Shown here: positions 1,872-62,552 of the stretch, one piece after another | How the letters are laid out: each line of letters opens with the position of its first letter | Numbering within the stretch: the first letter of the stretch is position 1 | NCBI GenBank assembly: GCA_002104905.1 | Contig: MCFE01000193.1 | Location: forward strand, 62,001-126,000 | Source: Basidiobolus meristosporus CBS 931.73 | Lineage: Eukaryota > Fungi > Basidiobolomycota | Length of the DNA: 64,000 nt | Direction of reading: 5' to 3' | Program-made: the position numbers and the translations under genes | The notes under the pieces: model-generated | Databases searched by the model: none | What the model saw: only the letters and a program-made list of their open reading frames with translations | Told to the model about the DNA's origin: nothing

Positions 1872-1894
1872 CTTTAGAATAGATTAAGGCAATT

Positions 1895-2519: not shown

Positions 2520-2545
2520 AGACTTGTTCCATTGTACTGTGCCAG
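2520..2545 (+). repeat. Left TIR of the AGACTTGTTCC DNA-transposon family
   Basis: AGACTTGTTCCATTG...GTGCCA matches the ends at 12990, 13413, 13683 and 22228. Confidence 0.55.
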
Positions 2546-4619: not shown

Positions 4620-4687
4620 GATGTAATGGCACGTGCAGATGCAACTTGATGCGCTGACATGGCCCTTGGCTAAGTGTGATGTGATGC

Positions 4688-25709: not shown

Positions 25710-26058
25710 TCTTGTAAGAGTCTTGGAGATATTGGAAGGGACTGGGAGAACAAATAGATTATGTGGTTTTCACATAATGATTCATTGAATGTAAAAGTAG
25801 TATTTAAACTTTTACTTGGTCTTGGCATTACAAACACATAGAATAGGTTAAGGAAGGTCTCAAGAACATGTGTGCAAAGTTTGGGGCTGTTTGGACAACT
25901 TTGAGAATTTTCATGTTCTGGGTACTTGGTATTTTGGTGAAAATGTTCTAAGTAACTCCCGACAAGGAATTTGGTCAGTATTCTCCAGGATTTGAAGGTG
26001 ATGATCTACGTAACTAAGTTAGGTGAATATTTAGGTGCAAATACAAGTTTTTACAACA
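25710..26058 (-). repeat. Copia family B LTR shared by two tandem elements
   Basis: 349 bp; on the minus strand preceded by PPT GAGTGGGAG and followed by PBS GGTTATGGGCCCC. Confidence 0.88.
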
Positions 26059-29000: not shown

Positions 29001-29801
29001 TAAAGGTCAGTGTATGGCTTCCTTCACTGCTTCTAAGGTCTACTTGGCAGGTTCCTTCTCCCACTGTATCAAGTGTTCTATTGTCACCCATGAAAACCTT
29101 CTTAATTGGAATTTCTTGATATTGGGTAAAAAGTTCTTTTTGGTGTGTAAAGTGTTGAGAAGCTCCAGGGTCAATATACCACGTCTGAGAATCCTTGTTT
29201 GTGGTCATATTTAGTGCAGATATGAATAGTGTATCTTCAGTTGTTGCAGCATTTCCATATACAGGCTTCTTTTGCTGATAATCTCTCTTTTTGAGACTCC
29301 AGTCTGATGTGTGTCCTTTCCTTTTGCAGTAGTTGCAAAATAGGTTGCTGTTGCCTTTGTAGGGTTTTGGGTACCTCCTTTGTTGGTTATCATTGCTTAT
29401 TAAAGCACTTCCTTCTTCCTTCTTATTGGCGCTTGATTTTCTTAATTCTTCATCCAGGAGCCTTCCATATACGTAATTTAAGGTCAAATTGACAGTTCTG
29501 GACTCTGGGCTGATGCAAGGCCCTGAAACTTGTCTGTCAGGCTATTCAGGATGGTAACTATCACATCCTCATCAGTAGTTGGTATGCCCACAGATTCCAT
29601 CTCATCTACCAGCAGGGTAATTCTGTTAATTAGATTTTTCATTTCTTCTCCTGGCAGCATCTTTGTAGTAAAGAATTTTTGTCTCAGATACATTTTCTTG
29701 GCAGCTGAACATGACTGGTAGGTGTCTTCTAATGCTTTCCAGGCATCCTTTGCCGTTTTTGCTCTTGAGCATTGAATTAGCAATTAGTTCTTAACATTAA
29801 G
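26059..29801 (-). mobile_element. Ty1/copia family B element 1, 5'-truncated within gag
   Basis: ORFs 29484-29783, 28906-29487, 28283-28870, 26511-28298 and 26070-26423 give gag, PR, IN, RT (YVDD) and RH (IADTFTKPL), with stops and frameshifts. Confidence 0.92.
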
Positions 29802-42145: not shown

Positions 42146-42217
42146 GGCTCAATGGTCTAGTAGTATGATTCCTCGTTCGGGTCGAGGAGGTCCCGGGTTC
42201 AATTCCCGGTTGAGCCC
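42146..42217 (+). tRNA. tRNA-Pro(CGG), intronless
   Basis: Acceptor stem GGCTCAA/TTGAGCC; anticodon stem CCTCG/CGAGG with loop TT-CGG-GT; GGTTCAATTCC T-arm; downstream TTTT. Confidence 0.96.
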
Positions 42218-42761
42218 GGTTCACTTTTGCCACTGTTTCATGGAAAGCATCTCCAGCCAGCGCATTGAAACGAATCCCACGGATGGTCCACTTTCTGGAA
42301 CACGTGGTGGGTGGAGATTCCAGGTGCCGAGTAGTTGTTGAACAGATTCATTCTGGAGGAGAGTTTCCGCAGTGTCGAGTGCCTTCGCTTCCCTCTACCA
42401 TGGTAGGGATCCTTCGGGGAATGGTTGGACTCCCATATGTACCTGGATGTCCGTACTTCGACGGGCTCCCGTTTCGAGAAAAAGATCCTCCCCCGTAGCT
42501 CCGCAATTTCATCTAAGGCTGGATGACTGGCACCTTCTCAGAAGCCAATCTCTCATTCAATATATGTATAAACACGCTCTAGGCAGTCATTCCGTTGACT
42601 ACAGATTACAGATTGAAGAATAGAGGTGAAGCCACATACTTGGTGGGTTTAAGACTTTCATCTTCGGCAATAACTCGGTAGTTTTACCAAACGGCACATT
42701 GGTGATCAGGAGACTGACTACGCCGATGGTTTTTTTTGTGGGTGGGGGTTGTCGTATGTGA

Positions 42762-42907
42762 GATTTGCCCTTACCACTCGTGTCTACCCAACACTTCATA
42801 GCTCAACCCAAGTCACTCTGAACCTGGCTAAGGGCCAGAGCGTCTTGGTTGAGGAGATGACTCTATGGCCTATAACTGATCGTGCTTTTCTAAACCGCGA
42901 CAAATAA
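42762..42907 (+). pseudogene. 3' remnant of the GH32 gene
   Basis: Matches 56062-56207 (FALTTRVYPTLHSS...FLNRDK*). Confidence 0.92.
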
Positions 42908-43327
42908 ACCAGAATATCTTTTGACTTGGTCATTCCCCGCCACAATGCAATGCCTCAGATTAAGCAATCAATTTTAGTTTACACAGGCTGTAGCGCATTT
43001 TGTGTGATTTGCTGGAGGGAATGCATAATTGCGACTGACCAAAAATAGATCGTGTCCCTAATTTAGGTGCAATAGTGGACGCAACGGCACAAATAAGGCT
43101 GGATCAGTGTCGGCAACCAGTTCCAACCTTGAACACTTGGGTCAAATCAACGAGTGACAACACAAGCATGAGATCGGACGCGCCAGGAAGAACCTTCGAT
43201 GAATTAGCGCATCACCATATGGAGGTAGATTGTACTGAACCTTCGATATTATTAATGGTTCACCGGCTCTATAAAAGATTCCTTGCTGCACCCACCTAGT
43301 ATCATTACCACTACCACTACCATTACC

Positions 43328-44008
43328 ATGAATTCTGAATTACGCGCCAAAGCCTTCCTTTTCGACCTGGACGGCACGCTAGTCAATACAATCGCCGCTG
43401 CAGAGAGGCAGTACACCATCTGGGCCACTAAACTCGGGATCGACCCCAAGCCGGTGGTTGAATACTGCCACGGGGTCAGAGCAATCGAGGTGATGCAAAA
43501 GTTCGCACCCAAGGGGGCGAAGATCACCATTGACGATGCCAACGAGTGGGAAACTGGGTTCAGCAATGATTCGGAAGGGGTCTTCGTACTCCCGGGCATA
43601 CCAGAGCTCCTGAAGAAGCTTCCCAAACACCGCTGGGCTATTGTTACTTCGGGCGTCCGTGCCATGGCTGAAGCAAGACTACGGCAAATGGATCTTCCTG
43701 TTCCTGACGTATTCATCACAGCAGACACCGTAACCCATGGAAAACCTCACCCCGAAGGATACTTGGCTGCCGCATCCAAGCTTGGTTTCAGGCCCGACGA
43801 ATGCATCATCTTCGAGGATGCACCGGCCGGAATCGAGGCAGGAGTTAGCGCCGGGATTCGCACTATCGGTATCACCACTAGCTACAAGCCAGAAACCCTC
43901 CACAAAGCGAATGTTCTCATCGATGATTATCATGACATTCTGGTGGAAAAGTCGGCCAACGAGGAGGAGTTTGAAATCAAGGTGCTAAGAAACAGAAGAT
44001 CGGATTAA
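43328..44008 (+). CDS. HAD-superfamily sugar/glycerol-phosphate phosphatase (GPP1/DOG1/YfbT-like), intact, intronless, 226 aa
   Basis: Motif I FDLDGTLV, motif II IVTSG, GKPHPEGY and motif IV FEDAPAG; TATAAAA upstream. Confidence 0.9.
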   Translation: MNSELRAKAFLFDLDGTLVNTIAAAERQYTIWATKLGIDPKPVVEYCHGVRAIEVMQKFAPKGAKITIDDANEWETGFSNDSEGVFVLPGIPELLKKLPKHRWAIVTSGVRAMAEARLRQMDLPVPDVFITADTVTHGKPHPEGYLAAASKLGFRPDECIIFEDAPAGIEAGVSAGIRTIGITTSYKPETLHKANVLIDDYHDILVEKSANEEEFEIKVLRNRRSD

Positions 44009-44338: not shown

Positions 44339-44402
44339 GACTCCGAAGCAAAGAGCCTCGAAAACATGGTAGGAGGACGCGAGGCTGCTGCCCACAATCC
44401 GG
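44339..44402 (+). pseudogene. Degenerate Con-6-like relic
   Basis: GACTCCGAAGCAAAGAGCC...GAGGCTGCTGCCCACAATCC aligns with the 5' third of the Con-6 CDS; no start codon. Confidence 0.65.
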
Positions 44403-45167
44403 CAAGAAACGCTCGGTAATTTTATCAAAAGAGTAGAGTTACCACAAGGAATCTAAGGGATCAGGATGCAAACACGGGTGTGCTGAAGAGCGATGAAATG
44501 GGTTGTTCACTTGGAATAGAAAGTGCAACAAGTACAAGCGAAATCGTAAAAATCGTGAAGAATTAGTGCAAGCAGTTGCAACCAAAATTCGGACGGACAT
44601 GGGGGGTTGTTGTTGATACTACGTCACTTGTTCCTCGCCCCAAGTTACAACGAATAGAACCCCTTGCTGAGAGTCCTTATTTGAGCTACATATATATACA
44701 TAAGCATCACGTGCGCAATATGGTTGGTAAGCCAGCTGATATGACTGTGTGGCATATGTGTGGAGGTGATGTGATGTGATGTGATGGCATGAAGAGTAGG
44801 AGTCGGACTGCACCTGGAGGAAAACTCCATCGTTGGCTAATCTAGTGGTACATCACTCTACTTGTCTGAGCATAGTCACCACCAGATGCGAGTCGAGTTT
44901 CCCGTATGGACAGCGGATCGCTGCCCACGTCATTCTAGCTAACTGAGTCAAATGCGAACTTTAACTGAGGTTAGATACGCAATGTTCTATAGCGGTGATG
45001 TCAAAGGGAATAGGTACTGAGCATACAAGGCTGCCTCCGTTCTTTGGCTGAAACTAAACACGCAACACTCGATTTCCGTGATGTCATAGGAAATATCGAA
45101 CGAGTACATAAACTTGGCACAGATCTCCGGGCACTGCAGAGTATCTATCTCATAACTCGGAAACAAC

Positions 45168-45353
45168 ATGGAATACGAAGGAAAGAACCCCGGGAACGTT
45201 GAAGGAGGATTCAAAGCAGCCGCGCACAACCCCAACGTCTCAGCCGAGAAGCAACAAGAGTCGCTAGATAAGGCATCCCAGATCCACGAAGAACGCACTG
45301 GCAAACCGCTGAAGGAGCAGACCATTGAAAAGGAATCCAAGGATTCGAAATAA
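45168..45353 (+). CDS. Con-6-like conidiation hydrophilin, copy 1 (61 aa)
   Basis: KNPGNVEGGFKAAAHNPNVS resembles the Con-6 family motif (NPxNVxxGxKAAxxNPxVS); small, charged, no Cys/Trp. Confidence 0.85.
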   Translation: MEYEGKNPGNVEGGFKAAAHNPNVSAEKQQESLDKASQIHEERTGKPLKEQTIEKESKDSK

Positions 45354-46062
45354 AGATAAGGCACGCTGCAATATGTGCGCTGATTAGGGAAGAAATACAA
45401 AGGGATTCATTCGGATTCTGGAGATCTAGGCGTCCATCGTTTTGCTTGGTTCCTCGATGATGTAATAAATACAAAAGTACGCACCTTTTTATTAGCACTT
45501 TCAAACCTTCTGGTATCATAGCTCTGTGTCCAAGTGAACATCCAAGCCAAAGCCAGGCATGAGCATCATTCAAATCTAAAGTGTTATCGTGTTGGATTAT
45601 GAGTATAGGCGATAATTAATGCACTTATACTGTAGAGCGCTTATATCGAACTTCAATCAGATGCATGATATCGTTGTTAAAGCATACTGCCCACGGAGAA
45701 ATAAAGAGGAAGAGAGGATGAATAACGCACCAATAGGCCACAGATATCAATCGCACTCCAGGCCAGATGCGGCATTCTTATTCATTTTTTCCGATTATTG
45801 CACTTGTTGACCTCGATCATACATCGCGTATCGGTCAAATCCGATCAGACAAACCGTGGCGCAAATGATTTAAGATACCAAAGACTACGCTGATCTGCAC
45901 TGTGGATATCGATCGAATCAAGCCGATGGCATAATGTCGCTGAATGAATCTAGTCATGAAGCACTCATCATTCATGATGTCACCAGAACCGCACGTCGAG
46001 TATATAAGTCTACAAAAGGTTTCCTGCTCTACAGAACATCTATCCAGCAACCCAGAAACACC

Positions 46063-46248
46063 ATGGACTACGAAGGAAAGAACCCCGGAAATGTTGAGGG
46101 AGGCTTCAAGGCTGCCGCCCACAATCCCAACGTCTCAGCCGAGAAGCAACAAGAGTCACTAGAGAAGGCATCCCAGATTCATGAAGAGCGTACCGGCAAA
46201 CCGCTGAAGGAGCAAACCATTGAAAAGGAATCCAAGGATTCAAAATAA
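46063..46248 (+). CDS. Con-6-like protein, copy 2
   Basis: MDYEGKNPGNVEGG...; TATATAA at 46001. Confidence 0.85.
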   Translation: MDYEGKNPGNVEGGFKAAAHNPNVSAEKQQESLEKASQIHEERTGKPLKEQTIEKESKDSK

Positions 46249-47047
46249 ACCTCAGATACACTACGAAGTGTACATTGAAATCTCAGTTGCCATTTCGCTT
46301 GTGTCTTGACCAGAGAGGCTGGCTTTCGCCCACAAAAGAAATGGGAGGCTTGAACTAGTAGGGAACAATAGAATGATGAAATCACTTGTCTAGTGCTCAA
46401 TCAAGCCGAAGTGCCTTCGAGTTCCCAGAACCAATGGAATACGAAAATATGAGTAGCTCTCACATATTTGGTTGTGTACTTGGAGTTTAGTGAGGTACAA
46501 CTACAATGCATTCTGATGCGAATACAGCTGCTCATGGTAACCTTGGATGGTGAAGGCCCTGGTGATGCAATTACTAGGCGTTTATATCAGGGAGAATAGG
46601 TTGTTGCAGATGGTGATCCACGTAAATTAAGTATGTGAAGCCGAGTGTGAAGCACCAGCCCAGCCACAATCTTGTATAAGATTAGGGAGTCATCAATAGA
46701 GACTCCAACTGATTTGGCATGGTCATCTCGTTGATCGTTACTATGTTTGACCTTGATCATCAATTGTGTACCTGACATAATCATCTCATCAATCGTGTAT
46801 TTATTAGTTCTGATCATGACGTTCCTTCGAAACAGTGGGTGATGATGCAGCTCAGTTATATCCCGCAGTCGTCGTGATCTTTACACTAAGGATCAATCGT
46901 TCAAACCGTCGTTGACAAGGATCAGACACTGAACCCATGACACTATCAAGACCAGATTCTGATGCCATAGGGAGTATTGTTCGTGTATAAAAGTCAGTCA
47001 AAGATATCATCTACCACAGATCATTTCTCTAATAGCTCAAAAACATC

Positions 47048-47233
47048 ATGGAATACGAAGGAAAGAACCCCGGAAATGTTGAAGGAGGATTCAAAGCCGC
47101 CGCCCACAATCCCAACGTCTCAGCCGAGAAGCAACAAGAGTCACTAGAGAAGGCATCCCAGATTCATGAGGAACGTACCGGCAAACCGTTGGAGGGGCAG
47201 ACCATTGAAAAAGAATCCAAGGATTCAAAATAA
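47048..47233 (+). CDS. Con-6-like protein, copy 3
   Basis: Intact 61-aa ORF with TATA ~60 nt upstream. Confidence 0.85.
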   Translation: MEYEGKNPGNVEGGFKAAAHNPNVSAEKQQESLEKASQIHEERTGKPLEGQTIEKESKDSK

Positions 47234-48231
47234 AACTCAGATACACTACGAAGTGTTCATTGAAAATTCAATTGCCATACTCATGTTAAAGCTCTAGAGG
47301 TAGGCCTTTTCCCGCAAAAGAAATGGGAGTCTTGATCGAGTGCGAACGATGCAATGCTCAAATCACCATCATAGTACCCAATCAAACCGAAGAGTTTGGG
47401 AGTGTTGAAAACAATGGAGTACTAAAATATGAGCAACCCTCACGTGGTTCATTGTGTATCTGGGGCTTGGTGAGTTACAACCATAATGCATTCTGATACG
47501 AATGCAACTGTTCATGAATACCTTGAAAAGTGAAGGTTTCGTTAGCGCAATCACTGAGCACATATCAACGAGAGTAAGGTATCACCGATGAGTATGCAGG
47601 AAAATTCATGTAAGCAAAGCCAAGTATGAAGTACATCCTCCTCCAAAGCTTATCCATTAATGACTACTCTAGCTGAATTTGTTCGTCCATTATGTTTACA
47701 TTCTAGAGGGTGAAGGCTTGCGGTGGTGCAATCACTTGGCACATATGCTAATGGCTGTAGGATATCGCCGATGGGAGCCCATGAAGATTTAGGTAAGTCA
47801 ATTATGAAATACAACCCACTGCAATGCTTGGTCATCAATGGTGACTCCAGCTGGATTTGTTCGCCCATTGCTTCCAAGTTCAATAAGGTTACAGCATTCC
47901 CTCGATCTGAGATTGTGGTAGTTTACACCTTAAATGATGTTGTGATGCGAGTGAAGTGTCATCCATTGAGACCCTTTGTGGGTATAATCTTTTCATCGAT
48001 CGTGTACTTGTTGATTCCGATCGTCGTGCTCCTTCGATCTGAGGGGCGCTGACATGACCTTGTTGATGTCCGCAGTCATCGCGATCATCACGATCTGTAC
48101 CCTGGGAATCGATCAGTGCAAACGTCTGACGAAGACTAGACATTGATGCCATAGGGGGTAAGGTTCATGTATATAAGCTTGTCGAAAGTACCTTCTTCCA
48201 CACATCATTTCTCCAATAACTCAAAAGCATC

Positions 48232-48417
48232 ATGGAATACGAAGGAAAGAACCCCGGAAATGTCGAAGGAGGACTCAAGGCTGCCGCTCACAATCCCAAC
48301 GTCTCAGCCGAGAAGCAGCAGGAGTCACTAGAAAAGGCATCTCAGATCCATGAAGAGCGTACCGGCGAGCCGTTGAAGGATCAAACTATTCAAAAGGAAT
48401 CCAAGGATTCAAAATAA
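48232..48417 (+). CDS. Con-6-like protein, copy 4
   Basis: Intact 61-aa ORF. Confidence 0.85.
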   Translation: MEYEGKNPGNVEGGLKAAAHNPNVSAEKQQESLEKASQIHEERTGEPLKDQTIQKESKDSK

Positions 48418-49140
48418 AGACAAAATACGCTCTAACGTGCGTGCTGAATAATGAAAGAACTTGGGTCAATATTGGCAATGTGAACCTTCCTAATTACCAA
48501 AAAAATAAGAGTCGTAACTGGAAATAGCAGTCTTGCCAAAGAGGGGAATTCATTGAAAGGGGTTCAGTAGGGTTCTGGAGACGTAGGCTCCTCGATCATA
48601 AGATGGATGCAACTCAACGGATATTTTACGAATCCTTTCAAACCTCTGGGTCTTATAATTAACAATGTCCAAGCGGGTGCCTGGGACAAAAAAGTACGCC
48701 AATATCGTGTAGATATGAGGAATAATCGTGCTGAAGTAGAGACAAGTATTTACACATGTAGTCAAGTACCAATTAGGTGAAAGATATTATTCTCAATGCC
48801 ATATTTATAGAGATGAATAATGCACCAATGGGGTGCAGAAATCAATCATACTTTGGACCAGATGCGGCATTCTTATTTATTATTTCCGATTATTGTACTT
48901 GTTGACCTCGATCATGCATCGCGTCTTGGTCAAATCTGATCAGACAAACCGTTGCGTAAATGATCGAACATACCCAAACCTATTCCGATCTGCGCTGTGG
49001 ATATCGATCGTGTAAAGCCGACAGTATAATGACACGAAGTACTCACCATTCATGATGTCATCAGGGCCATAGGCTGAGTATATATTCTTGGGAAAGGCTT
49101 CCTCTTCTGCAGAATATCTATCCAGCAACCCAGAAACACC

Positions 49141-49326
49141 ATGGAATACGAAGGAAAGAACCCCGGGAACGTTGAAGGAGGACTCAAGGCTGCCGCACAC
49201 AATCCCAACGTCTCAGCCGAGAAGCAACAAGAGTCACTAGAGAAGGCATCCCAGATTCATGAAGAGCGTACTGGTAAACCGTTGGAAGGGCAGACCATCG
49301 AAAAGGAATCCAAGGATTCAAAATAA
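49141..49326 (+). CDS. Con-6-like protein, copy 5
   Basis: Intact 61-aa ORF. Confidence 0.85.
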   Translation: MEYEGKNPGNVEGGLKAAAHNPNVSAEKQQESLEKASQIHEERTGKPLEGQTIEKESKDSK

Positions 49327-49940
49327 AATTCATGCACACTGTCAAGTGTACCTCAAAACTTCAGTTACTATGTTACTTGCGTGGAATAAATAAATACGTG
49401 TATCCTTCGCTTAGTTAATTGTATATTTGGGGCTTGGGGAGTTACAACCACAATACATTCTGATGAGAATGCAGCTGCTCATGATAACCTTGGAAAGTAA
49501 GAGCTTCGGTAGCATAATCAATTGGCATATATCAATGACAGTATAGCCGATGGGAATCCATGTAAATTCAAGTATGCGAGGTCAAGTGGCATGCACCAGA
49601 TTAGCTACTGTCCTATATGAGACTTAGGAGTCATCAATTGAGACTCTAGTTGACTTGAGTTAGTCATCTCATCGATCATGGCACTAATTGACCTTGATCG
49701 TCGATTGTGTGCATGTCATAGTCATCTCATCGATCGTGTATTTATCAGTTCTGATCACAACGTTCTTTCAATCTGGTAGGTGCTGATGCAGCTCTGTTAT
49801 ATCCCGCAGTCGTCAAGATCTTTGAAGCATGGATCGATCGAAGATCAGGCGCCGATGCCATAGAGAGTAAGGCTCGTGTATATAAACCAGTCAAAGGTAG
49901 CTTATCCCACAGATCATTACTCTAATAACTCAGAAACATC

Positions 49941-50126
49941 ATGGAATACGAAGGAAAGAACCCCGGAAATGTCGAAGGAGGACTCAAGGCTGCCGCTCAC
50001 AATCCCAACGTCTCAGCCGAGAAGCAACAGGAGTCACTAGAAAAGGCATCTCAGATCCATGAAGAGCGTACAGGCGAGCCGTTGAAGGATCAAACTATTC
50101 AAAAGGAATCCAAGGATTCAAAATAA
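49941..50126 (+). CDS. Con-6-like protein, copy 6
   Basis: Intact 61-aa ORF. Confidence 0.85.
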   Translation: MEYEGKNPGNVEGGLKAAAHNPNVSAEKQQESLEKASQIHEERTGEPLKDQTIQKESKDSK

Positions 50127-50807
50127 AGACAAGGCACGCTCCAATGCGCATGCTGATTATTGTTGCAAACCTTGTCATTGAATATGTATAAATCCATTAA
50201 GTGGTCGGATTCCACACATTCATGTGGGCCTTGCATAATTCATCCTTAGTCCACCCACCATTATAACATAACAGAGTTGCGAGAATTCGAGATTTGTCAA
50301 GCACCTAAATCTCAGTATCTGATTACGAAAGCGAGAATGCAAGCAAAATACGAACTTGCATATCAAGTATAAAGAATAATCGTGTTGAGGTGTGAATTTA
50401 AGCCATTGTTGAAGCACTGATCCTATACGTACGAATGTGTGTAGTCAAGCTCAGATGGATAAGAAAGCAACAGAAAAAAAAGGCGACTGACTTGTCAATA
50501 GGACTAATATGTTACCACACTTCAGGCCAGACGCGACATTCTTATTGATTGTGGATGTCGATCGTACATTGTGTATCAGACAAATCTGATCATACTAACT
50601 GCTGTGCAAATGATCCAACATACCCAAAGATATCCCGATCTGCACTGTGGATATCGATCGAGTCAAGCCGATGGCATAATGTTGCTGATTGAGTCTAGTC
50701 ATGAAGCACTCATCATTCATGATGTCACCAGAACCGCAGGTCGAGTATATAAGTCTACAAAAGGTTTCCTGGTCTACAGAATATCTATCCAGCAACCCAG
50801 AAACGCC

Positions 50808-50993
50808 ATGGAATACGAAGGAAAGAACCCCGGAAATGTTGAGGGAGGCTTCAAGGCTGCCGCACACAACCCAAATGTCTCAGCCGAGAAGCAACAAGAG
50901 TCACTAGAGAAGGCATCCCAGATTCATGAAGAGCGTACCGGCAAACCGCTGAAGGAACAAACCATTGAGAAGGAATCCAAGGATTCAAAATAA
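50808..50993 (+). CDS. Con-6-like protein, copy 7
   Basis: Intact 61-aa ORF from ATG 50808; the longer track ORF is upstream read-through. Confidence 0.85.
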   Translation: MEYEGKNPGNVEGGFKAAAHNPNVSAEKQQESLEKASQIHEERTGKPLKEQTIEKESKDSK

Positions 50994-53459
50994 AACTCAG
51001 ATACACTACGAAGTGTACATTGAAATCTCAGTTGCCATTTCGCTTGTGTCTTGACCAGAGAGGCTGGCTTTCGCCCACAAAAGAAATGGGAGGCTTGAAC
51101 CAGTAGGGAACAATAGAATGATGAAATCACTTGTCTAGTGCTCAATCAAGCCGAAGTGCCTTCGAGTTCCCAGAACAATGGAGCACTAAAATATGAGCAA
51201 CTCTCACCTGTCTGATTGTGTACTCGGAGTTTAGTGAGGTACAACTATAATGCATTCGAGTGTGAATGCAGCTGCTCATGGTAACCATGGAAGGTGAAGG
51301 CCCTGGTGGGGCAATTACTTGGCGTTTAAGTCAGGGAGAGTAGGTTATCGCAGATGGAAACTCTCACTCAACATATGTATAAACACGCTCTAGGCAATCA
51401 TTCCATTGACTACAGATAGAGGTGAAACCACGTGCTTGGTGGGTTTTAAACTTTCATCTTCGGCGATACCTGAGTAGTTTTCTAAACGGCATATCGGTGG
51501 TATGATCCTCAATAAAAGGTGGCCTTGAGGAGTACTCCGAATTCTGAGCATCTGCTGATCCACATGACTTTTGTAGCCTGCTTAGGTTACGGACCAGGAT
51601 GGTACTGGGTTCATCACCCGATACCTTAATATCCAACTCCGTGTGTTTATCTTAAATCTCCTACCCTTCCAGGATGTATGTTTTCTTCTGGTGGTCAGGA
51701 GATCGATTACGCCAATTCGCTTTTTTTGCGGGGGGGGTTGTCATATGGGAGAAGAGTGTGTCTCGGCAATGTGGTTGCTGATGAGATTTACTCGTTTTCG
51801 GTCTTGTTCATCAAATTTTGACAAGCTAACCACAGACCTACCCCCTGCTATGCAAGCTGCATCGATGGTGAAAGTCGACTAGGCTCTTCAAACAAGGTGG
51901 GAAGTGACATCTGGTGGGATGGTGGAATATGCTGGAGTAGATGGGGCAGATTATTACCTGCATCGCAGTAGATAGCACTCGGCTATTAGCCTAGAACGGT
52001 TTCGACATCCTCCAGCAATAGCATATCCTGATCTAAACAATATTCTCCCTGGAATCGTGTCTACCAGGCTATGTGCACAGCATGCAAGGATCCATTTTTT
52101 TCGCCAGAACGTGGCGGCGGGTCCTGTGATGGAATCAAAGAACGGTTCAATTTCCCGAGATCTGTGTCGTTGTAATTGGATTTCTCGGTGCCAGCCAACA
52201 ACCACATTGTTTCAATTTCTGTGCGATGCGAAATGCATCTCCCAATTACAGGAACGGATGCGTTGCAATTTCCCCTGGAAACTGGGTCCTGATAGGTGGG
52301 CCCGCTAGATCGGAGCTGGCTAAGGAATCTACATATCCGATTCGGATCCGATCGTATCGCGCGCAAATCAGTGTCATGATGGATGAAGGTGGGTCTCGTG
52401 AGTGAGTTCTGATGATTCGACAAGTAGGCGTTCTAAGAATGTGGAAGCAGGTTCAAGATAGGAAGTAATGTGCGCTGGGTTAAGTATTATTACCTGTAAC
52501 CATGTTTGGTAAAGGCAATGATGGTAAGTTTTTATATCGAACTGGGTGGCCTATACGAAGGTAAATTTCACTCGGGTACTCCTACGTAATGTTGACTGTC
52601 GAATGTGTTGCTCGCTTGCTGGAATTTTGGGTGGTAATGTTTCCGCTTTGCACTTTTGAAGACTTCATGTGCTACAGGGAATCAAATTGTATTGCTGATG
52701 ATCACTGAGAACGCAGAACATATGTGCTGTAGACTGGGGTTATGGTCCCTGTATCTGCATGCGGGCAATACGAGGAGATAGTAGGATACATAGACTCCAT
52801 CACACAAGAAATTCCCAAACATGAAGCCAATTGATGGGAATTCAGTCCGTTTGTTGCACCAAGTTCTCTTGTCTGAGATTAGGAAATGCTGGGTCTAGGA
52901 TGATTTGTATGTGATTGCTCAACACTAGCGAGAAGAGGCATTTGAGATATGGATTCATCACCGTTTAGGCCTTATTCGAGCCACGTATAGACACTTAGTG
53001 TGACGCTTGAGTTGACACACACTTGACACTTCATAGTTCAGTGTTACCCAAAGTGAAAATGTAAGGGTCGATCTACTCAGTCAGGGCCAATAGCTAGCCA
53101 GAGCACGTGACGAAGCTACATGGTAAATGAGTCTCGACCAAATAAGTGGCACCATCGATTCCGTTAGCATCCATCACGGTTATCAAAGTGAAGAGGATGG
53201 CTACCTGGTAGTCAATCGAGTTTCCACCACCTCGGAAACGCTTACACTCCTCCGGTAATTGGTCGTCCCTTCGCCACAATACAAGCAGTTGGATCCTCTT
53301 ATCTATCAATCCAAATTGGTTAGATTTTGGGCTGGATTAGGTAGAGTGAAATCAAGGTTTCAGAGTGGGTTTCACTTCCCTCGAAGGAAATCCAGGCTAC
53401 GTTCATTTTTTGGTTAATAGGCAACTAAATCAAGCAGATGTGGTTCATTCTACCTGAAG

Positions 53460-53535
53460 TTCGGTGCACAACTGATCTTGATAGATAGGGACGCTTTTTC
53501 GGTGCACAACTGATCTTGATAGATAGGGACGCTTT
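53460..53535. repeat. Perfect 38-bp tandem duplication
   Basis: TTCGGTGCACAACTGATCTTGATAGATAGGGACGCTTT x2. Confidence 0.9.
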
Positions 53536-54391
53536 TATCAGAGAAGTGAATCTGGTGGCTCCTAAATTGGCGCACTAAACTTCGTCGCTAAGGGCGTGCC
53601 ACTTTATTTGATTGTAAGGAAGGGTGAGCCCAGATTAGTCCAATTCAGACCGCAATTAGTCCGTTGTTGACCAGGGATTTGTTGTCTTGACCAGAATCTG
53701 AAGGTTGAAGGTTAGAAATGTCACTTGATACTATCTAACCGCTGAATCATTCACTTACTGAATAGTCAATATTAAATGAGTCTAGTACCCCTGATTGCCC
53801 GCAAAGGCTTCAACAGCCTCACTTGGTTCGTGACCAGGCTCCATGATGCGTCGTTAAGGCATCCAAGATCCTGGTGACCTTGTCGACTGTCAGCTCCGTG
53901 AGGATAGAAGCCCACTCATTTTGCCCAATAGGGCAATTTACGATTGTGTGCGTGGTTTTCGAATGGTGCTGTTTATTCAGTACTCTACAAGGCTTTATGT
54001 GCACCCGTAGTGTGCTGATATCCTAAAATCTCATCGCATAGCTACATGTAATAGTATACAAGTGTTATCAGACAAAGAACCCACAAAATCATAGGGCCCA
54101 TTTTCCTTACTCCACAAGGGAGCGTTCTAGGTGGTATCGAAGCCTGAGAGAATATAGATTAGGTATGATCAGTCCAGGGTGAAGCTTAGGATTGGGTGAG
54201 TGTAAATCATTTCCATAAGCATATATTAATCTTTCTCCGTTTACTAATACTACGTTAGGATAAGTGCCGAAGTGGATGGTGGCAGATGTGCCTGGTTTCT
54301 TGACGCGTAAAAACTCCACTGTCCTACTTCCTAGTTGGCGGTCATCTAACATTATATAAGACCCGACAATCTACATGAATCAATATTCAAA

Positions 54392-56207
54392 ATGTGTTTC
54401 AGATACTTGTCTTCCAGCTTGCTCCTCCTTGGCTCTTTGGCGTTGGCTGCGGACCACCTAGGAAAGCCTGGGTCCAAATTCTCAAAATACAGGTAAGCGA
54501 AAGCGTGCGCACGTAGCAGTACGGATATCTACTAAACAAGACCATTATAGACCGACCTACCACTTTCAACCGCCAAAGAATTGGATGAATGACCCCTGTG
54601 CACCCATGAAGACCCCGGATGGAAAGTACCATCTTTTCTATCAATACAATCCCTACGATGCGATTTGGGGAAACATGACTTGGGGCCATGCGTCCTCCTC
54701 TGATCTGATCCATTGGGAAGACGAAGAAAATGCTCTGGAGTCCGACCAGCCCTACGACCACCTTGGTATCTTCTCTGGTAGCGGAATCACCAAGGGCTAT
54801 CAAGGGAAGCCAACCGTTGGTTATACTGCAGTATCGAAGCTTCCCATCTCTTGGAAGATCGACTACCCGTTAGATGCAGAACAGCAAGCACTCGCATATA
54901 CAGATGACAATGGGGCCACTTGGCAAAAGCTAGGCGTCGTCTTGCCTACACCACCTGATGTCAACAGAACCGGTTTTAGAGATCCTTTTCTGTTCCGTAG
55001 CTCGACCTTCGACTCGTTGTTAGCTGGTAGCAACCGTAGTTTGGAGAATATATACATGACCATTAGCGGAGGGACCAATGCCACCACGAAGGGAGGAAGG
55101 CTTTGGCTGTACAAATCCCAAGACTGGATCAACTGGGAATTACTCCCTGCTCCGTTCTATGGAGCTGCTGGAGACCAGCCTCTCAACAAGTTCTCAGAGT
55201 ATACTCTGGGTCACAACTGGGAGATGGCCAACTATTTTGTCTTGAATGAGGAGGAGAAAGCCAACCAATGGCATACGGTCATCATCGGGGTCGAAGGAAA
55301 CAGTAAGTACAACACCATCCGCTGGCCTATTTGGGCTATGGGACGTATCCAAGCCAATAACAACAGCATCGAGTTTGTACCAGTCATCAGTGGTATACTC
55401 GACAATGGGATCGACTATGCGGACAATTCATTCTACGATCCTGCCACAGGGCAGAGGATTTTGTGGGGCTGGGTCACTGAGGATGATTCGGAGAATCTCC
55501 AGATCCGCAAAGCCCAGGGATGGTCGGGCATGCTAACTGTACCTCGAGAGATCTTCCTCTACCAAAAGACCGGGGTCTTCTACACCAACCAACTCCAAAG
55601 CCACATAGGAGGCCTCGACTTCACCTGGGATGAGACGCAGCAGACCAATGTCATCTCAACCCTAGGCATTAGACCAATCAAGCAGCTAGAACATCTTAGA
55701 GATCAGGTTGATGTAGAGCTTCATGACTTCGAATTGGGGCATTCGGACACCACCCCCTATATTACTTCCGGAAAGCGTAGCTACGAAATTAGCGCGGTGT
55801 TCGATTTCTCCAAAGACCCAACCGCTCAAGCGGGGATCACTCTGATGAGATCGGAGGATGGAAAAGAAGAGACGACTATCCTGTATGACCCAGTGACCGC
55901 GAACATGACCATCACTCGTAGTAGATCCTCCTTGAACCCGCTTTACGCCAACACTACCCAATGGGGTACGTTCCCACTCTTATACACCGCCGATGGACTT
56001 GAGAAACTGGAGTTGCGAGTGTTCGTTGACAAATCCATCATTGAAGTGTTCGCTAACGATCGATTTGCCCTTACTACTCGTGTCTACCCGACACTTCATA
56101 GCTCAACCCAAGTCACCCTGAACCTGGCTAAGGGCCAGAGCGTCTTGGTTGAAGAGATGACCCTCTGGCCTATAACTGATCGTGCTTTTCTAAACCGCGA
56201 CAAATAA
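54392..56207 (+). CDS. Secreted GH32 beta-fructofuranosidase (invertase/inulinase/fructosyltransferase-like), ~585 aa, exons 54392-54492 and 54551-56207
   Basis: Signal peptide MCFRYLSSSLLLLGSLALA; 58-nt GTAAGC...TAG intron joins to RPTYHFQPPKNWMNDP. Motifs WGHASS, FSGS, FRDP, WEMAN and C-terminal LRVFVDKSIIEVF. Confidence 0.93.
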
Positions 56208-56624
56208 ACCAGAATATCTTTTGACTTGGTCATTCCCCGCCACAATGCAATGCCTCAGATTAAGCAATCAATTTTAGTTTACACAGGCTGTAGCGCATTT
56301 TGTGTGATTCCCTGGAAGGAATGCATAATTGCGACTGACCAAAAATAGATCGTGTCCCTAATTTAGGTGCAATAGTGGACGCAACGGCACAAATAAGGCT
56401 GGATCGGTGTCGGCAACCAGTTCCAACCTTGAACACTTGGGTCAAATCAACGAGTGACAACACAAGCATGAGATCGGACGCGCCAGGAAGAACCTTCGAT
56501 GAATTAGCGCATCACCATATGGAGGTAGATTGTACTGAACCTTCGATATTATTAATAGTTCACCAGCTCTATAAAAGATTCCTTGCTGCACCCACCTATC
56601 ATTACCACTACCACTACCATTACC

Positions 56625-57304
56625 ATGAGTTCTCAATTACGCGCCAAAGCCTTCCTTTTCGACCTGGACGGCACGCTAGTCAATACAATCGCCGCTGCAG
56701 AGAGGCAGTACACCATCTGGGCCACTAAACTCGGGATCGACCCCAAGCCGGTGGTTGAATACTGCCACGGGGTCAGAGCAATCGAGGTGATGCAAAAGTT
56801 CACACCCAAGGGGGCGAAGATCACCATTGATGATGCCAACGAGTGGGAAACTGGGTTCAGCAATGATTCAGAAGGGGTCTTCGTACTCCCGGGCATACCA
56901 GAGCTCCTGAAGAAGCTTCCCAAACACCGCTGGGCTATTGTTACTTCGGGCGTCCGTGCCATGGCTGAAGCAAGACTACGGCAAATGGATCTTCCTGTTC
57001 CTGACGTACTCATCACAGCAGACACCGTAACCCATGGAAAACCTCACCCCGAAGGATACTTGGCTGCCGCATCCAAGCTTGGTTTCAGGCCCGACGAATG
57101 CATCATCTTCGAGGATGCACCGGCCGGAATCGAGGCAGGAGTTAGCGCCGGGATTCGCACTATCGGTATCACCACTAGCTACAAGCCAGAACCCTCCACA
57201 AAGCGAATGTTCTCATCGATGATTATCATGACATTCTGGTGGAAAAGTCGGCCAACGAGGAGGAGTTTGAAATCAAGGTGCTAAGAAACAGAAGATCGGA
57301 TTAA
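56625..57304 (+). pseudogene. Second HAD phosphatase copy with a 1-bp deletion near the 3' end
   Basis: Near-identical to 43328-44008, but CCAGAACCC replaces CCAGAAACCC near 57190, changing the C-terminus (ORF ends 57284). Could be an assembly indel. Confidence 0.75.
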
Positions 57305-57306
57305 AT

Positions 57307-57362
57307 CGCAAACCGCAAACCGCAAACCGCAAACCGCAAACCGCAAACCGCAAACCGCAAAT
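57307..57362. repeat. (CGCAAAC)n 7-bp tandem repeat, 7 perfect units plus 1 imperfect
   Basis: Directly visible; only 3-4 imperfect units in the left copy (~44011-44040). Confidence 0.95.
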
Positions 57363-57661
57363 CACTAATGGTACATCGTGCATCGCAAATCCCCAAGTAA
57401 ATAGAGTCACACGAAGGCTTCCTACTGGCCGGAATCAATTTTGTGGCCAGATCAAGATTCATTGATCCATGATGAAACCAAATTAAAGGACAAGGCATTG
57501 CTTGTGCTGATTAGTATTTATCATCGGAATATTGTTCCTAGCCACTCTGGCGGACTCCAGGGTAAGCGACTCCGCTGACTGAAACTAGGCACGCGATAAT
57601 CGATATTGATGGGTGTAAAGGCTTGCAAATGGCTCTCTCTTCCACCGAGTATCTATCTTGC

Positions 57662-57724
57662 GACTCCGAAGCAAAGAGCCTCGAAAACATGGTAGGAGAA
57701 CTCAAGGTTGCTGCCCACAATCCG
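57662..57724 (+). pseudogene. Degenerate Con-6-like relic (duplicate of 44339)
   Basis: GGAGAACTCAAGGTTGCTGCCCACAATCC aligns with the Con-6 GGLKAAAHNP codons. Confidence 0.65.
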
Positions 57725-58486
57725 ACAAGAATCGCTCGATAATTTTATCGAAAGAGTAGAGCTACCACAAGGAATCTAAGGGCTCAGGATGCAAGCACGG
57801 GTGTGTTGAATAGTGATGAAATGGGTTGTTCACTTGGAATAGAAAGTGCCCCAAGTATAAGCAAAGTCGTAAAAATCTTGAAGAATTAGTGCAAGCAGTT
57901 GCTAACCAAAATTCGGACGGACATGGGGGGTTGTTGTTGATACTACGTCACTTGTTCCTCGCCCCAAGTTACAACGAATAGAACCCTTGCTGAGAGTCCT
58001 TATTTGAGCTACATATATATACATAAGCATCACGTGTGCAATATGGTTGCTAAGTCAGCTGATATGACTGTGTGGCATATGTGTGGAGGTGATGTGATGT
58101 GATGGCATGAAGAGTAGGAGTCGGACTGCACCTGGAGGAAAACTACATCGTTGGCTAATCTAGTGGTACATCACTCTACTTGTCGTGAGCATAGTCACCA
58201 CCAGATGCGAGTCGAGTTTCCCGTATGGACAGCGGATCGCTGCCCACGTCATTCTAGCTAACTGAGTCAAATGCGAACTTTAACTGAGGTTAGATACGCA
58301 ATGTTCTATAGCGGTGATGTCAAAGGGAATAGGTACTGAGCATACAAGGCTGCCTCCGTTCTTTGGCTGAAACTAAACACGCAACACTCGATTTCCGTGA
58401 TGTCATAGGAAATATCGAACGAGTACATAAACTTGGCACAGATCTCCGGGCACTGCAGAGTATCTATCTCATAACTCGGAAACAAC

Positions 58487-58672
58487 ATGGAATACGAAGG
58501 AAAGAACCCCGGGAACGTTGAAGGAGGATTCAAAGCAGCCGCGCACAACCCCAACGTCTCAGCCGAGAAGCAACAAGAGTCGCTAGATAAGGCATCCCAG
58601 ATCCACGAAGAACGCACTGGCAAACCGCTGAAGGAGCAGACCATTGAAAAGGAATCCAAGGATTCGAAATAA
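58487..58672 (+). CDS. Con-6-like protein, copy 8 (appears identical to copy 1)
   Basis: Intact 61-aa ORF. Confidence 0.85.
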   Translation: MEYEGKNPGNVEGGFKAAAHNPNVSAEKQQESLDKASQIHEERTGKPLKEQTIEKESKDSK

Positions 58673-59416
58673 AGATTTGATACATTGCTCGGTATTTACT
58701 AAAAGTCCGTGACCAGCAAGTAGGATAAGATACAGGAAGAGTATAGATGGACAAAAATTATGTATATGGTCTTTAGCTACAGATGTTCTACCTTGCGTAG
58801 ATGGAATTTTCGGTTAGCGTGGCATATAAGTCGAAGCATGAGATATCAGCCTTTGCCAGCAAAACTACCGGGATTAGGGAACATCGAAATATTATTGATC
58901 ACTTGTGTAACGCTTGAATCAGCAAAATACTGGTGTAATTTGGGTTCGGTACGTTGCAAACATATGGTGTTCCAATGGGTATATCAATATTATATGTCAA
59001 GACATTACTAGTGCGATCACTTTGCATATATGTAAATGAGAGAAGGATGTTGCTGATATAAAACGAGGAATATTAAGAGAAGTATGAAATACAACATTCA
59101 AGTGTAGTTATGACCGAATGTACGGTTGTGATAAGAGTGGAGTGTCGTCTATAGAGACTAGCTGATTTTTCCTGTTACATCTATTCATCAACCACGTACC
59201 AATTTCTCCCAATCTCAGTGATCCTTCGATCTGGTGGGTGGTGACATGACCCTGCTGTGTTCCGCAGTCATCGCGATTTGTGCACTAGAGATCGATCAGT
59301 GCAAATACCGTGGAAAAACACTGGACATTGATAACATAAGGAGTAAGGCTCGTGTATATAAGCTTATCAAAGGTACTTTCTTCCGTAGATCGTTTCTCTA
59401 ATAACTCAAAAGCACC

Positions 59417-59602
59417 ATGGAATACGAAGGAAAGAACCCCGGAAATGTTGAAGGTGGACTCAAGGCTGCCGCTCACAATCCCAACGTCTCAGCCGAGAAG
59501 CAACAGGAGTCACTGGATAAGGCATCCCAGATCCATGAAGAGCGTACAGGCGAGCCGTTGAAGGATCAAACTATTCAAAAGGAGTCTAAGGATTCAAAAT
59601 AA
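59417..59602 (+). CDS. Con-6-like protein, copy 9
   Basis: Intact 61-aa ORF. Confidence 0.85.
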   Translation: MEYEGKNPGNVEGGLKAAAHNPNVSAEKQQESLDKASQIHEERTGEPLKDQTIQKESKDSK

Positions 59603-60340
59603 AGACAGACACACTTCGAAGCGTATGCTGATTAATGAAAGAACTTGGGTCAATATTGGCAATGCTAACCTTCCTAATTACCAAAAAAATAGAGTCGTAA
59701 CTGGAAATAGCAGTCTTGCCAAAGAGGGGAATTCATTGAAAGGGGTTCAGTAGGGTTCTGGAGACGTAGGCTCCTCGATCATAAGATGGATGCAACTCAA
59801 CGGATATTTTACGAATCCTTTCAAACCTCTGGGTCTTATAATTAACAATGTCCAAGCGGGTGCCTGGGACAAAAAAGTACGCCAATATCGTGTAGATATG
59901 AGGAATAATCGTGCTGAAGTATAGGCAAGTATTCACACATGTAGTCAAGTACCAATTAGGTGAAAGATATTATTCTCAATGCCATATTTATAGAGATGAA
60001 TAATGCACCAATGGGGTGCAGAAATCAATCATACTTTGGACCAGATGCGGCATTCTTATTTATTATTTCCGTTTATTGTACTTGTTGACCTCGATCATGC
60101 ATCGCGTCTTAGTCAGATCTGATCAGACAAACCGTTGCGTAAATGATCGAACATGCCCAAACCTATTCCTATCTGCACTGTGGATATCGATCGAGTCAAG
60201 CCGATGGCATAATGTTGCTGATTCAGTCTAGTCACGAAGCAGTCACCATTCATGATGTCACTAGGACCATAGGCCGAGTATATAAGTTTACCAAAGGTTT
60301 CCTGGTCTACAGAATATCTATCCAGCAACCCAGAAACACC

Positions 60341-60526
60341 ATGGAATACGAAGGAAAGAACCCCGGAAATGTTGAAGGAGGACTCAAGGCCGCCGCGCAC
60401 AACCCCAACGTCTCAGCCGAGAAGCAACAAGAGTCACTAGAGAAGGCATCGCAGATTCACGAAGAGCGTACCGGCAAGCCGCTTAAGGAGCAGACCATTG
60501 AAAAGGAATCCAAGCATTCAAAATAA
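60341..60526 (+). CDS. Con-6-like protein, copy 10
   Basis: Intact 61-aa ORF ending KHSK. Confidence 0.85.
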   Translation: MEYEGKNPGNVEGGLKAAAHNPNVSAEKQQESLEKASQIHEERTGKPLKEQTIEKESKHSK

Positions 60527-61481
60527 AGATCGAACACGCTCTCTTATATGAATTGAAAACGCGAATCCCTATAATGTAGAAATACAGTAATCTTTCATTT
60601 GGAGTTTGAAGTTGCAGGTAGATTTTACATGGAAAACGTTATGATAAATGTATCCCAGTTCGTGGAATGATGGCATTGAGAAACAAAATAGCCCAGAGCT
60701 ATCAGTCATTTTTGACAATAGAACACCATCGTCCAACCAAGGCTAAAGGGACCGAAAAGCCTCAGAGTGCCATTACTCCTCACTCTCTTAGTAAAGCGAG
60801 ATATTGTGATCGTGAACAATGTACGTGGCTTTTCCTTTAAATTTCAGGTACCATACCACTTAAAATTACCATGTGTATCCTTCATTTGTTTGATTGTGTA
60901 TGAGTTTGGTAAGTTACAACAATGATCTATTCTGATAAGAATACAGCTGCTTATGACAACCATGGAAAGTGAAGGCTTCGGTGGTGCAATCAGTTGGCGT
61001 ATATGTCTATGACAGTAGTATATCGCCGATGGGGGCCCATAAAATTTAGGCAAGTCAATTATGAAATACAACTCAGTGCAAAGCTTGGTCATCAGTGGTG
61101 ACTCCAGCTGGATTTGCTCGCCCAGTGTTTTAAAGTTCAGTAAGGTTGCAGTACTCCCTCAATCTGGGATTGTGGTAGTTGACACCTTAAGTGATGTTGT
61201 GACGTGAGTGAAGTGCCATCCATTGAGACCCTTTGTTAGCACAGCCTTTTCATCGATCGCGTTCTTGTTAGCTCCGATCACAGTGCTCCTTCGATCTGAG
61301 TGGTGATGACATGACTCTGCTGTGTTCTGCAGTCATCGCGACCTGCATACTAGGGATCGATCAGTGCAAATGCCGTGTAAAAACACTGGACATTGATGTC
61401 ATAAGGAGTAAGGTTCGGGTATATAAGCCAGTCAAAGTTGTCCTCTTCCATGCACCATTTTTCCAATAACTCAAAAGCATC

Positions 61482-61668
61482 ATGGAATACGAAGGAAAGA
61501 ACCCCGGAAATGTCGAAGGAGGACTCAAGGCTGCCGCTCACAATCCCAACGTCTCAGCCGAGAAGCAACAGGAGTCACTAGAGTAAGGCATCCCAGATTC
61601 ATGAAGAGCGTACAGGCGAGCCGTTGAAGGATCAAACTATTCAAAAGGAGTCTAAGGATTCAAAATAA
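61482..61668 (+). pseudogene. Con-6-like copy 11 with a 1-bp insertion creating an early TAA
   Basis: CTAGAGTAAGGCA versus CTAGAGAAGGCA; stop after residue 34. Confidence 0.8.
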
Positions 61669-62365
61669 AGACAGACACACTCCGAGGTGTATGCTTATTA
61701 ATGAAAGAATTTGGAAAAAATCAGAGATCTTAACCTTGACTAGTAGGAAATATTTCGAATGAAATTTAGCCAGATGCTTGACTGACATTGAGGCTTTGCT
61801 TTTTGAAGATCTCACTAATAGTTATGTGCATACCAAGCGCGAGAGGAAAAAGCAATGAATAATGGGGATATTATAGGGCTTTTCAGGAGTTTCATGGGTG
61901 TTTTGGTCGAAGGCAGGTTATGGTGTTTGATGGTTTATTACCTAATACTTCAAAGTATGAATCCAGTCTAATGATGTGCTTGGGTATCGCTGAGGGCTGT
62001 ACTTAGTAGTATCGATTTGAAGAATTGACGAAACAAACGAAATTGAATACATTTAGTTAACATTCAGGTTCTTATTCCTCGCCTGTGATTGAACTCCTTG
62101 TTACACTTGCTCACCTTTACTGTACACTGTGTATCAGTCAAATCCGACCAGACTAAATGTTGCGCAAATGATCGAACATACCCAAAGCTACCCCGATCTG
62201 CACTGTGAATATCGATCGAGTCAAGCCGATGGCATAATGTCGCTGATTGAGTCTAGTCACGAAGCAGTCACCATTCATGATGTCACCAGGGCCATAGGCC
62301 GAGTATATAAGTCTACCAAAGGTTTCCTGGTCTACAGAATATCTATCCCACAACCCAGAAACACC

Positions 62366-62552
62366 ATGGAATACGAAGGAAAGAACCCCGGAAATGTTGA
62401 AGGAGGACTCAAGGCCGCCGCGCACAACCCCAACGTCTCAGCCGAGAAGCAACAAGAGTCACTAGAGAAGGCATCCCAGATTCATGAAGAGCGTACCGGC
62501 AAACCGCTTGAAGGAGCAGACCATTGAAAAGGAATCCAAGCATTCCAAATAA
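62366..62552 (+). pseudogene. Con-6-like copy 12 with a late 1-bp insertion (altered, shortened C-terminus)
   Basis: CCGCTTGAAGGAG versus CCGCTGAAGGAG; ends PLEGADH* at 62527. Confidence 0.75.

Follow-up and report, generated by a model that had tools for sequence, protein, structure and literature searches.

Minimal Con-6 genes with a single domain in a tandem array of Basidiobolus meristosporus: old paralogues under purifying selection

CON-6 of Neurospora crassa (P34762) is a protein of 93 amino acids, and its relatives in Dikarya carry two to three Con-6 domains in 84–186 amino acids and are encoded by a single gene or a few genes in each genome. Aspergillus nidulans has ConF and ConJ, the latter being the CON-10 orthologue (PMC3424117). 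PMC12731236 reports that the basic leucine zipper (bZIP) protein AtfA of A. nidulans, whose motif is ATGACGTCA, positively regulates the light-induced genes conF and conJ. The locus described here lies in a stretch of 64,000 nucleotides, referred to as the window, from Basidiobolus meristosporus CBS 931.73 (assembly GCA_002104905.1, contig MCFE01000193.1, positions 62,001 to 126,000 of the forward strand). It contains 12 + strand copies of one 186-bp Con-6 coding sequence arranged head-to-tail, the product of which has a single domain and only 61 amino acids. It is near certain from the sequence that these copies are old, diverged paralogues under strong purifying selection.

The copies were located by blastn and tblastn of the first copy (c01) against the 64-kb window, together with a six-frame list of open reading frames (ORFs). 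In blastn, the copies matched c01 with E-values of 1e-59 to 1e-95 and DNA identities of 86–100%, and no further Con-6 copy was found by c01 on the - strand or elsewhere in the 64 kb. Block 1 comprises seven copies (45168–50993) and block 2 comprises five (58487–62552), with 7.5 kb between the blocks and a start-to-start distance between copies of 800–1184 bp. Trees of the promoters and coding sequences divide them into class A (c02, c05, c07, c10, and c12), class B (c03, c04, c06, c09, and c11), and a c01/c08 type (C), which follow each other along the chromosome as C-A-B-B-A-B-A in block 1 and C-B-A-B-A in block 2. The copies are as follows.

45168–45353, + strand: c01, intact, 61 codons; coding sequence identical to c08; C type
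46063–46248, + strand: c02, intact; promoter class A; E2D variant
47048–47233, + strand: c03, intact; promoter class B
48232–48417, + strand: c04, intact; class B; protein variant E46/D50/Q54
49141–49326, + strand: c05, intact; class A
49941–50126, + strand: c06, intact; class B; synonymous divergence (dS) of 0.05 from c04
50808–50993, + strand: c07, intact; class A; consensus-like protein
58487–58672, + strand: c08, intact; 100% identical to c01
59417–59602, + strand: c09, intact; class B
60341–60526, + strand: c10, intact; class A; D59H
61482–61668, + strand: c11, class B; pseudogene or sequencing error (1-nt insertion, TAA at codon 35)
62366–62552, + strand: c12, class A; pseudogene or sequencing error (1-nt insertion at about codon 48)

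An intact ORF of 61 codons is present in 10 of the 12 copies. The remaining two, c11 and c12, are 187 bp each, one nucleotide over 186, and are frameshifted: an extra T in c11 gives an in-frame TAA, and an extra T in c12 shifts the frame. Either case may be a young pseudogene or a base-calling error, and the break in c11 would be recent, because the nonsynonymous divergence (dN) of this copy is 0 against c04 and c06. A preliminary description of this DNA had proposed a 12-copy array of the 186-bp ORF; its copies and coordinates were recovered by blastn, whereas the ORF itself is lost in c11 and c12, two breaks which that description had overlooked. Tandem Repeats Finder (TRF) reported no short-period tandem array, the period of the Con-6 array being above the limit of that program.

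Comparison of all pairs by the Nei-Gojobori method gave a mean dS of 0.50 (range 0–1.0) and a mean dN of 0.025, a ratio of 0.05. The variable columns fall on codon positions 1, 2, and 3 in the numbers 6, 1, and 38 (binomial P = 2e-12). Forty of the 61 codons vary in DNA and eight in protein, exactly at residues 2, 15, 34, 46, 49, 50, 54, and 59, which agrees with the roughly eight variable residues noticed earlier; the different sequence classes ascribed to the spacers were likewise seen in the alignments. Eleven distinct coding sequences exist among the 12 copies. Against two copies of Basidiobolus ranarum, dS was saturated and dN was 0.06 (0.04–0.08). Conversion would have erased the synonymous differences, and therefore it is purifying selection on each copy that holds the protein. 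The preliminary description had offered purifying selection or gene conversion as the force that keeps the coding sequences alike; dN/dS of about 0.05 speaks for the former, and dS values of 0.05–1.0 speak against conversion as the homogeniser. Conversion appears to be limited to short patches. Contig MCFE01000470.1 of the same assembly carries block 1 again with 99.0% identity over 10.8 kb, and the coding differences between this contig and the window are clustered: c02 has seven of them, c06 three, and c07 four, and only one is not at a third codon position. On MCFE01000470.1, the patch within c06 reproduces the sequence of c09, as compared by eye with the alignment. The tight constraint on the Con-6 product argues for a specific structure or partner and not for generic hydrophilicity.

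The products of c01, c04, and c10 matched the Pfam Con-6 family (PF10346) at 39.9–41.2 bits (E 1e-10 to 4e-10, residues 7–33) against a gathering cut-off of 25 bits, and the B. ranarum homologue matched it at 41.1 bits. The Con-6-like identity first suggested from the letters alone is thus confirmed by the profile search. A HMMER search of 1.84 billion representative proteins returned 100 matches. All 98 matches outside Basidiobolus hold 2–8 Con-6 stretches per protein, in contrast to one per 61 amino acids in the array, so that within this sample only Basidiobolus has the single-repeat 61-residue protein. Two or more repeats are the usual Con-6 architecture, a typical trait and no formal requirement, from which the 61-residue products depart. 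The matches from Dikarya (Scedosporium, Melampsora, Lactifluus, Schizophyllum, Schizosaccharomyces japonicus, and others) have two to three repeats, and those from Amoebozoa and environmental eukaryotes have four to eight. No additional Con-6 protein of B. meristosporus was present among the distant matches, which were only Dikarya and environmental sequences. Residues 31–50 (ESL-KA--IH-ERTG-PL) are also conserved and lie outside the Pfam model. An environmental protein of 325 residues (P0009; Joint Genome Institute (JGI) sample 3300032739, 163–1140) consists of five AAAH..ESL-KA-EIH-ERTG-PL repeats. It matches the Basidiobolus peptide at E 1e-30 and has no Pfam match, and may represent an unrecognised sister repeat of Con-6.

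AlphaFold2, run on a 24-sequence alignment, predicted a helix at residues 8–19, a turn (NPNVS), a second helix at residues 26–44, and a disordered tail, with a mean predicted local distance difference test (pLDDT) score of 76. The four best Foldseek matches among reviewed proteins were three UPF0654 proteins of Schizosaccharomyces pombe (41–53% identity) and N. crassa CON-6 (39%); the PDB held no solved structure related by sequence. The composition of the product is 8.2% glycine and 34–36% charged residues, with a grand average of hydropathy (GRAVY) of -1.47 to -1.49. Hydrophilins are defined by more than 6% glycine and a mean hydrophilicity above 1, a definition reportedly laid down by Garay-Arroyo and colleagues in 2000. 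With its glycine at 8.2% and GRAVY at -1.49, the product falls within this definition, and in terms of composition the earlier hydrophilin label is appropriate. No N-terminal signal peptide was seen by eye in the 61-residue product; CON-6, ConF, ConJ, and the array product are all small, hydrophilic, and without a signal peptide.

The flanks of the copies are diverged overall, and the upstream alignments contain conserved islands. A TATA box (GTATATAAG) is located 63 nt upstream of the ATG, in line with the TATA-like element that had been placed about 60 nt upstream of each copy. The motif TGATGYCA (TGATGTCA or TGATGCCA) occurs at -88/-89 in 10 of the 12 copies and 21 times in the window, where 8.7 occurrences are expected. 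Farther upstream, six copies carry an exact GATCT-N11-ATCGATC (0 expected), and another four carry it with one mismatch. It is not found in c01 and c08. The GATC arms of this element are kept, and its N11 differs between the promoter classes. The final 14 nt before the ATG are conserved, and AATAAA overlaps the stop codon in all copies. The promoter of c07 serves as an example, and the order and spacing of its elements recur upstream of other copies.

50637–50753, + strand: promoter of c07, with GATCT-N11-ATCGATC at 50637–50659, TGATGTCA at 50720–50727, and GTATATAAG at 50745–50753

The element TGATGTCA is one base off the AtfA motif. The site resembling the cAMP response element (CRE) and the GATC pair are candidate ATF/CREB and white-collar elements, and each copy probably forms its own transcription unit. 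A possible hairpin in the 3' untranslated region (ACAC..GTGT, about 10 nt past the stop) was considered and rejected, since its pairing was no better than in shuffled sequences and its arms also pair when slid by two columns.

The history of the array can be followed both in the window and at other loci. The c04-c05 dimer (47939–49327) matches c09-c10 (59125–60527) at 87.6%, which indicates that two-gene (B + A) units were duplicated. Further copies are found in the B. meristosporus assembly, seven on MCFE01000470.1 and five on MCFE01000600.1, which brings the total to at least 24 (12 + 7 + 5). The array on MCFE01000600.1 (11330–15067) consists of three intact, one truncated, and one degenerate copy, includes both class A and class B, and is neighboured by an allantoicase gene and a gene with a metallo-beta-lactamase fold. 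In B. ranarum, at least seven stand-alone 60-residue genes are annotated, each on a short contig, and the two readable copies form their own clade in the tree, suggesting that expansion or slow homogenisation is species specific. The array grew by birth-and-death, in which duplication of B + A units and a larger tandem duplication of a glycoside hydrolase gene (GH32), a HAD-family gene, and Con-6 genes were accompanied by gene conversion over short patches and now and then by the decay of a copy, as in c11, c12, and the relics described below.

The array was also compared with sequencing reads by placing Logan contigs of four runs on positions 45100–51050 (5951 letters). Two Illumina runs of DNA size (X1 and X2, about 110 Mb) gave unitigs that recover every block 1 spacer with 0–2 differences, at a depth of about 155–230x, and about 350x for the single spacer that also occurs in block 2. 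These unitigs break within the repeated coding sequence, as expected. The order of the copies rests on the PacBio-era contig, since the unitigs do not show order. A third run (X3) is recorded as 'DNA?' and resembles RNA-seq, with 27 Mb of contigs, a 25-fold depth range, and short inserts flanked by adapters. Its contigs cover most of the coding sequence of c01/c08 together with the 5' flank (depth 175), 130 nt past the stop codon of c01, and two pieces around c06. Run X5 (2013, same species label) gave only short pieces of coding-sequence size with at least 95% identity at 49132 and 50798, and their 5' flanks were different. This suggests that X5 comes from a different strain or species, which has this gene family but with diverged promoters.

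Taken as a whole, an old tandem family of minimal single-domain Con-6 genes together with its functional interpretation is a reasonably probable explanation of the locus, and what it says on structure and evolution is near certain. What it says on function is more tentative, at slightly below even odds, and the dosage-amplified spore or desiccation locus suggested in the preliminary description is a conjecture of the same tentative kind. The product would be a small, cytosolic, and very hydrophilic peptide that forms a helical hairpin (helix-turn-helix) and ends in a disordered tail. Dormant or dispersal cells would produce it in large amounts from light- and stress-responsive promoters, as is the case for CON-6, ConF, and ConJ in Ascomycota, and the number of genes would take the place of the 2–8 internal repeats per protein of other eukaryotes. 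If ConF and ConJ are a guide, the peptide would more likely tune the osmolyte (polyol) content of spores and their germination than act as a plain desiccation shield. A bolder proposal, which we consider doubtful, is that the product of the arrays is the dominant small protein in dispersal or resting spores of Basidiobolus and is under an ancient dual control by GATC (white-collar-type) and ATF/CRE-like elements, as for con-6, conF, and conJ. If this were true, the light- and stress-controlled Con-6 spore module would be older than the split between Zoopagomycota and Dikarya, and one protective module would have been multiplied either within a protein or as a gene array.

Several observations weigh against this functional interpretation. 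The sequence TGATGTCA is one mismatch away from the CRE, (A)TGACGTCA, and the GATC pair resembles the white-collar half-sites of the Neurospora light-response element only loosely and inexactly. The conservation of promoter motifs among paralogues is partly due to common descent. Run X3 contains only parts of c01/c08 and c06, and one of the c06 pieces lies upstream of the TATA box. The exact 61-residue products of c01 and c04 correspond to no public gene call or transcript contig. Two of the 12 copies in the window and two of the five at MCFE01000600.1 are decayed, and decay in both arrays indicates that not every copy is needed. Finally, the genetics of conF and conJ in A. nidulans, as summarised in PMC12731236 with reference to Suzuki et al., show no protective role, which makes a simple desiccation protectant a poor fit.

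A different account of the copy number is sub-functionalisation, in which two or three old subfamilies (A, B, and c01/c08) are kept for different timing or cell types and not for dosage. A 12-nt indel and an unequal distance from the GATC element to the ATG set the promoter classes apart, the class B proteins share E46/D50/Q54, and the subfamilies differ at residues 15, 46, 50, and 54. Both classes also exist at the separate locus MCFE01000600.1, so their split is older than the spread of the loci. Nevertheless, we judge this account unlikely, since the core elements (GATC pair, TGATGYCA, and TATA) are common to both classes at equal spacing to the ATG, the protein differences between the classes are conservative, and each class has several near-identical members, such as c04 and c06 with their dS of 0.05.

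It is improbable that the array is a neutral by-product of unequal crossing-over in an unstable, transposon-rich region, with a copy number that gives no benefit. The setting would allow it: the first 34 kb of the window consist of nested long terminal repeat (LTR) retrotransposon sequence of the Ty3/gypsy and Ty1/copia types with a low GC content (0.36–0.42), and decayed copies exist. However, copies with dS of up to 1.0 keep dN at or below 0.05, which implies long selection after duplication, and B. ranarum also retains many intact copies.

Public annotation raises another question, namely whether the ORFs are exons of which neighbours are spliced into two-domain Con-6 proteins. The JGI model P0002 splices c01 to c02, P0006 splices c03 to c04, and P0001 splices c05 to c06, all with GT..AG sites, and two domains are the usual architecture of the family. 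The model of c07 has 87 residues and a false 5' exon, and the public models at the MCFE01000600.1 array (150 and 110 residues) are likewise extended or fused. Splicing of this kind is very improbable, because an ATG, a stop codon, a TATA box, and AATAAA belong to each single copy, while the three modelled introns are 0.8–1.1 kb long, use a different cryptic site in each pair (read by hand), and remove different parts of the protein. Moreover, no joints linking copies were found in the contigs placed on 45100–51050, and B. ranarum is annotated with stand-alone 60-residue genes. The fused models look like artefacts, and homology-guided modelling on two-domain Con-6 proteins is their likely source. 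The earlier remark that annotation often misses such short ORFs holds here in the sense that they were mishandled, neighbouring copies being fused. The reference annotation can be corrected accordingly: at least four public models at the locus are chimeric or falsely extended, and the true 61-residue genes are missing from public protein sets.

That the array reflects misassembly or a row of stacked haplotypes is hardly credible: MCFE01000470.1 does hold block 1 at 99.0% and is an allelic or very recent duplicate in the assembly, yet the copies within the contig differ by 8–14%, their spacers are unrelated, and the short-read unitigs contain every block 1 spacer and CDS-spacer (coding sequence to spacer) junction at even depth. 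Divergence between copies and the spacer unitigs together exclude a collapsed or stacked artefact, and the array first reported from the letters is real.

The genes and relics that flank the two blocks of the Con-6 array are as follows.

42761–42904, + strand: GH32 remnant, last 48 codons (tblastn of the intact GH32, residues 493–540 at 100%)
43283–44008, + strand: HAD-family hydrolase, intact copy upstream of block 1 (Pfam HAD_2, E 8e-27)
44345–44401, + strand: degenerate Con-6 relic ahead of block 1 (tblastn E 0.011)
54585–56207, + strand: intact GH32 glycoside hydrolase gene between the blocks (Pfam Glyco_hydro_32N and 32C)
56583–57301, + strand: second HAD copy with its C-terminal part in another frame (tblastn split into residues 1–204 and 202–241)
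57668–57727, + strand: degenerate Con-6 relic ahead of block 2 (tblastn E 0.018), a duplicate of the 44345 relic

Segment 42762–45357 is 96.4% identical to 56062–58676 over about 2.6 kb, which includes c01/c08, and the GH32 remnant lies at the left edge of this GH32-HAD-Con-6 duplication. The two blocks belong to a tandem duplication of a GH32-HAD-relic-Con-6 unit. The 2.6-kb segment is far more alike than the rest of the blocks (about 87%), so that it was either duplicated later or converted over a long tract. Stops break the frame on either side of the matched stretch in both relics. The two relics listed in the preliminary description do have weak tblastn matches, although they occupy equivalent positions in one duplicated segment and therefore represent a single ancestral relic that was copied once.

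Some additional features of the surroundings were recorded. An (AAACCGC)x8.4 microsatellite (57303–57361) directly follows the frame-shifted second HAD copy and is not present after the first copy, and a perfect 38-bp x 2 tandem repeat (53460–53536) is located in the 3.6 kb that separate block 1 from GH32. The retrotransposon stretch includes a 2.5-kb inverted pair with 97.8% identity (25929–28454 against 32322–29798) and direct repeats of about 91% (22960–25468 against 27302–29801). The sole Rfam match between 42 and 64 kb was a tRNA-Pro. This tRNA-Pro(CGG) occupies 42146–42217 of the window; the match to the near-identical MCFE01000470.1 breaks off at 42125, which leaves the gene 21 nt inside the matching part. 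Directly upstream of that point, MCFE01000470.1 has an intact gag-pol ORF of 1449 residues of the Ty3/gypsy type (coordinates 414–4763 and 5074). The arrangement resembles a Ty3-style insertion a short way upstream of a Pol III gene, present either as a haplotype polymorphism or as a feature specific to a duplicate locus.

No paper linking Basidiobolus with Con-6 or describing a Con-6 array was found in the literature, and no paper on Basidiobolus expression was found. The locus is a lineage-specific expansion of a known family, and the tandem growth of small stress genes is of a known kind. N. crassa CON-6 shares the Pfam Con-6 motif GKNPGNV-GG-KAA-HNPNVS-E with the array product at 39% identity. 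Unlike CON-6, the array product has the extra ESL-KA--IH-ERTG-PL module, is encoded by at least 24 gene copies in arrays, and is known here from sequence. The array promoters carry CRE-like and GATC elements, and on the Aspergillus side conF and conJ are light-induced and reportedly regulated by AtfA (PMC12731236). The multi-copy promoters lend themselves to footprinting of the elements by which light and stress act in an early-diverging fungus. The UPF0654 proteins of S. pombe (C22G7.11c, C11D3.01c, and C869.09) are the best reviewed matches, with their 41–53% identity extending over the helical hairpin. They have 79–140 residues and no known function, compared with 61 residues in the array product.

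The amoebozoan and environmental proteins P0007, P0008, P0010, and P0011, together with P0009, contain the same module of about 60 residues at 42–50% identity. P0009 shares the C-terminal module with the array product, whereas typical Con-6 proteins are without it. In the multi-repeat proteins, the module occurs four to eight times in one polypeptide, sometimes behind a SAP domain; in the array, it is distributed over separate genes. The array shows that the Con-6 module can multiply at the gene level rather than the domain level. The array also offers a very small, supposedly disordered protein under tight constraint, with dN/dS of about 0.05 while synonymous sites between species are saturated. 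Tandem arrays of stress or dosage genes are known from yeast CUP1, plant late embryogenesis abundant (LEA)/dehydrin clusters, and tardigrade CAHS/SAHS genes, and they vary in copy number and turn over by birth-and-death. The Con-6 array resembles them in its head-to-tail copies of a small gene and in its birth-and-death turnover. CUP1-type arrays are young and near-identical, whereas the Con-6 array is old, with dS of up to 1.0, and each of its copies is constrained.

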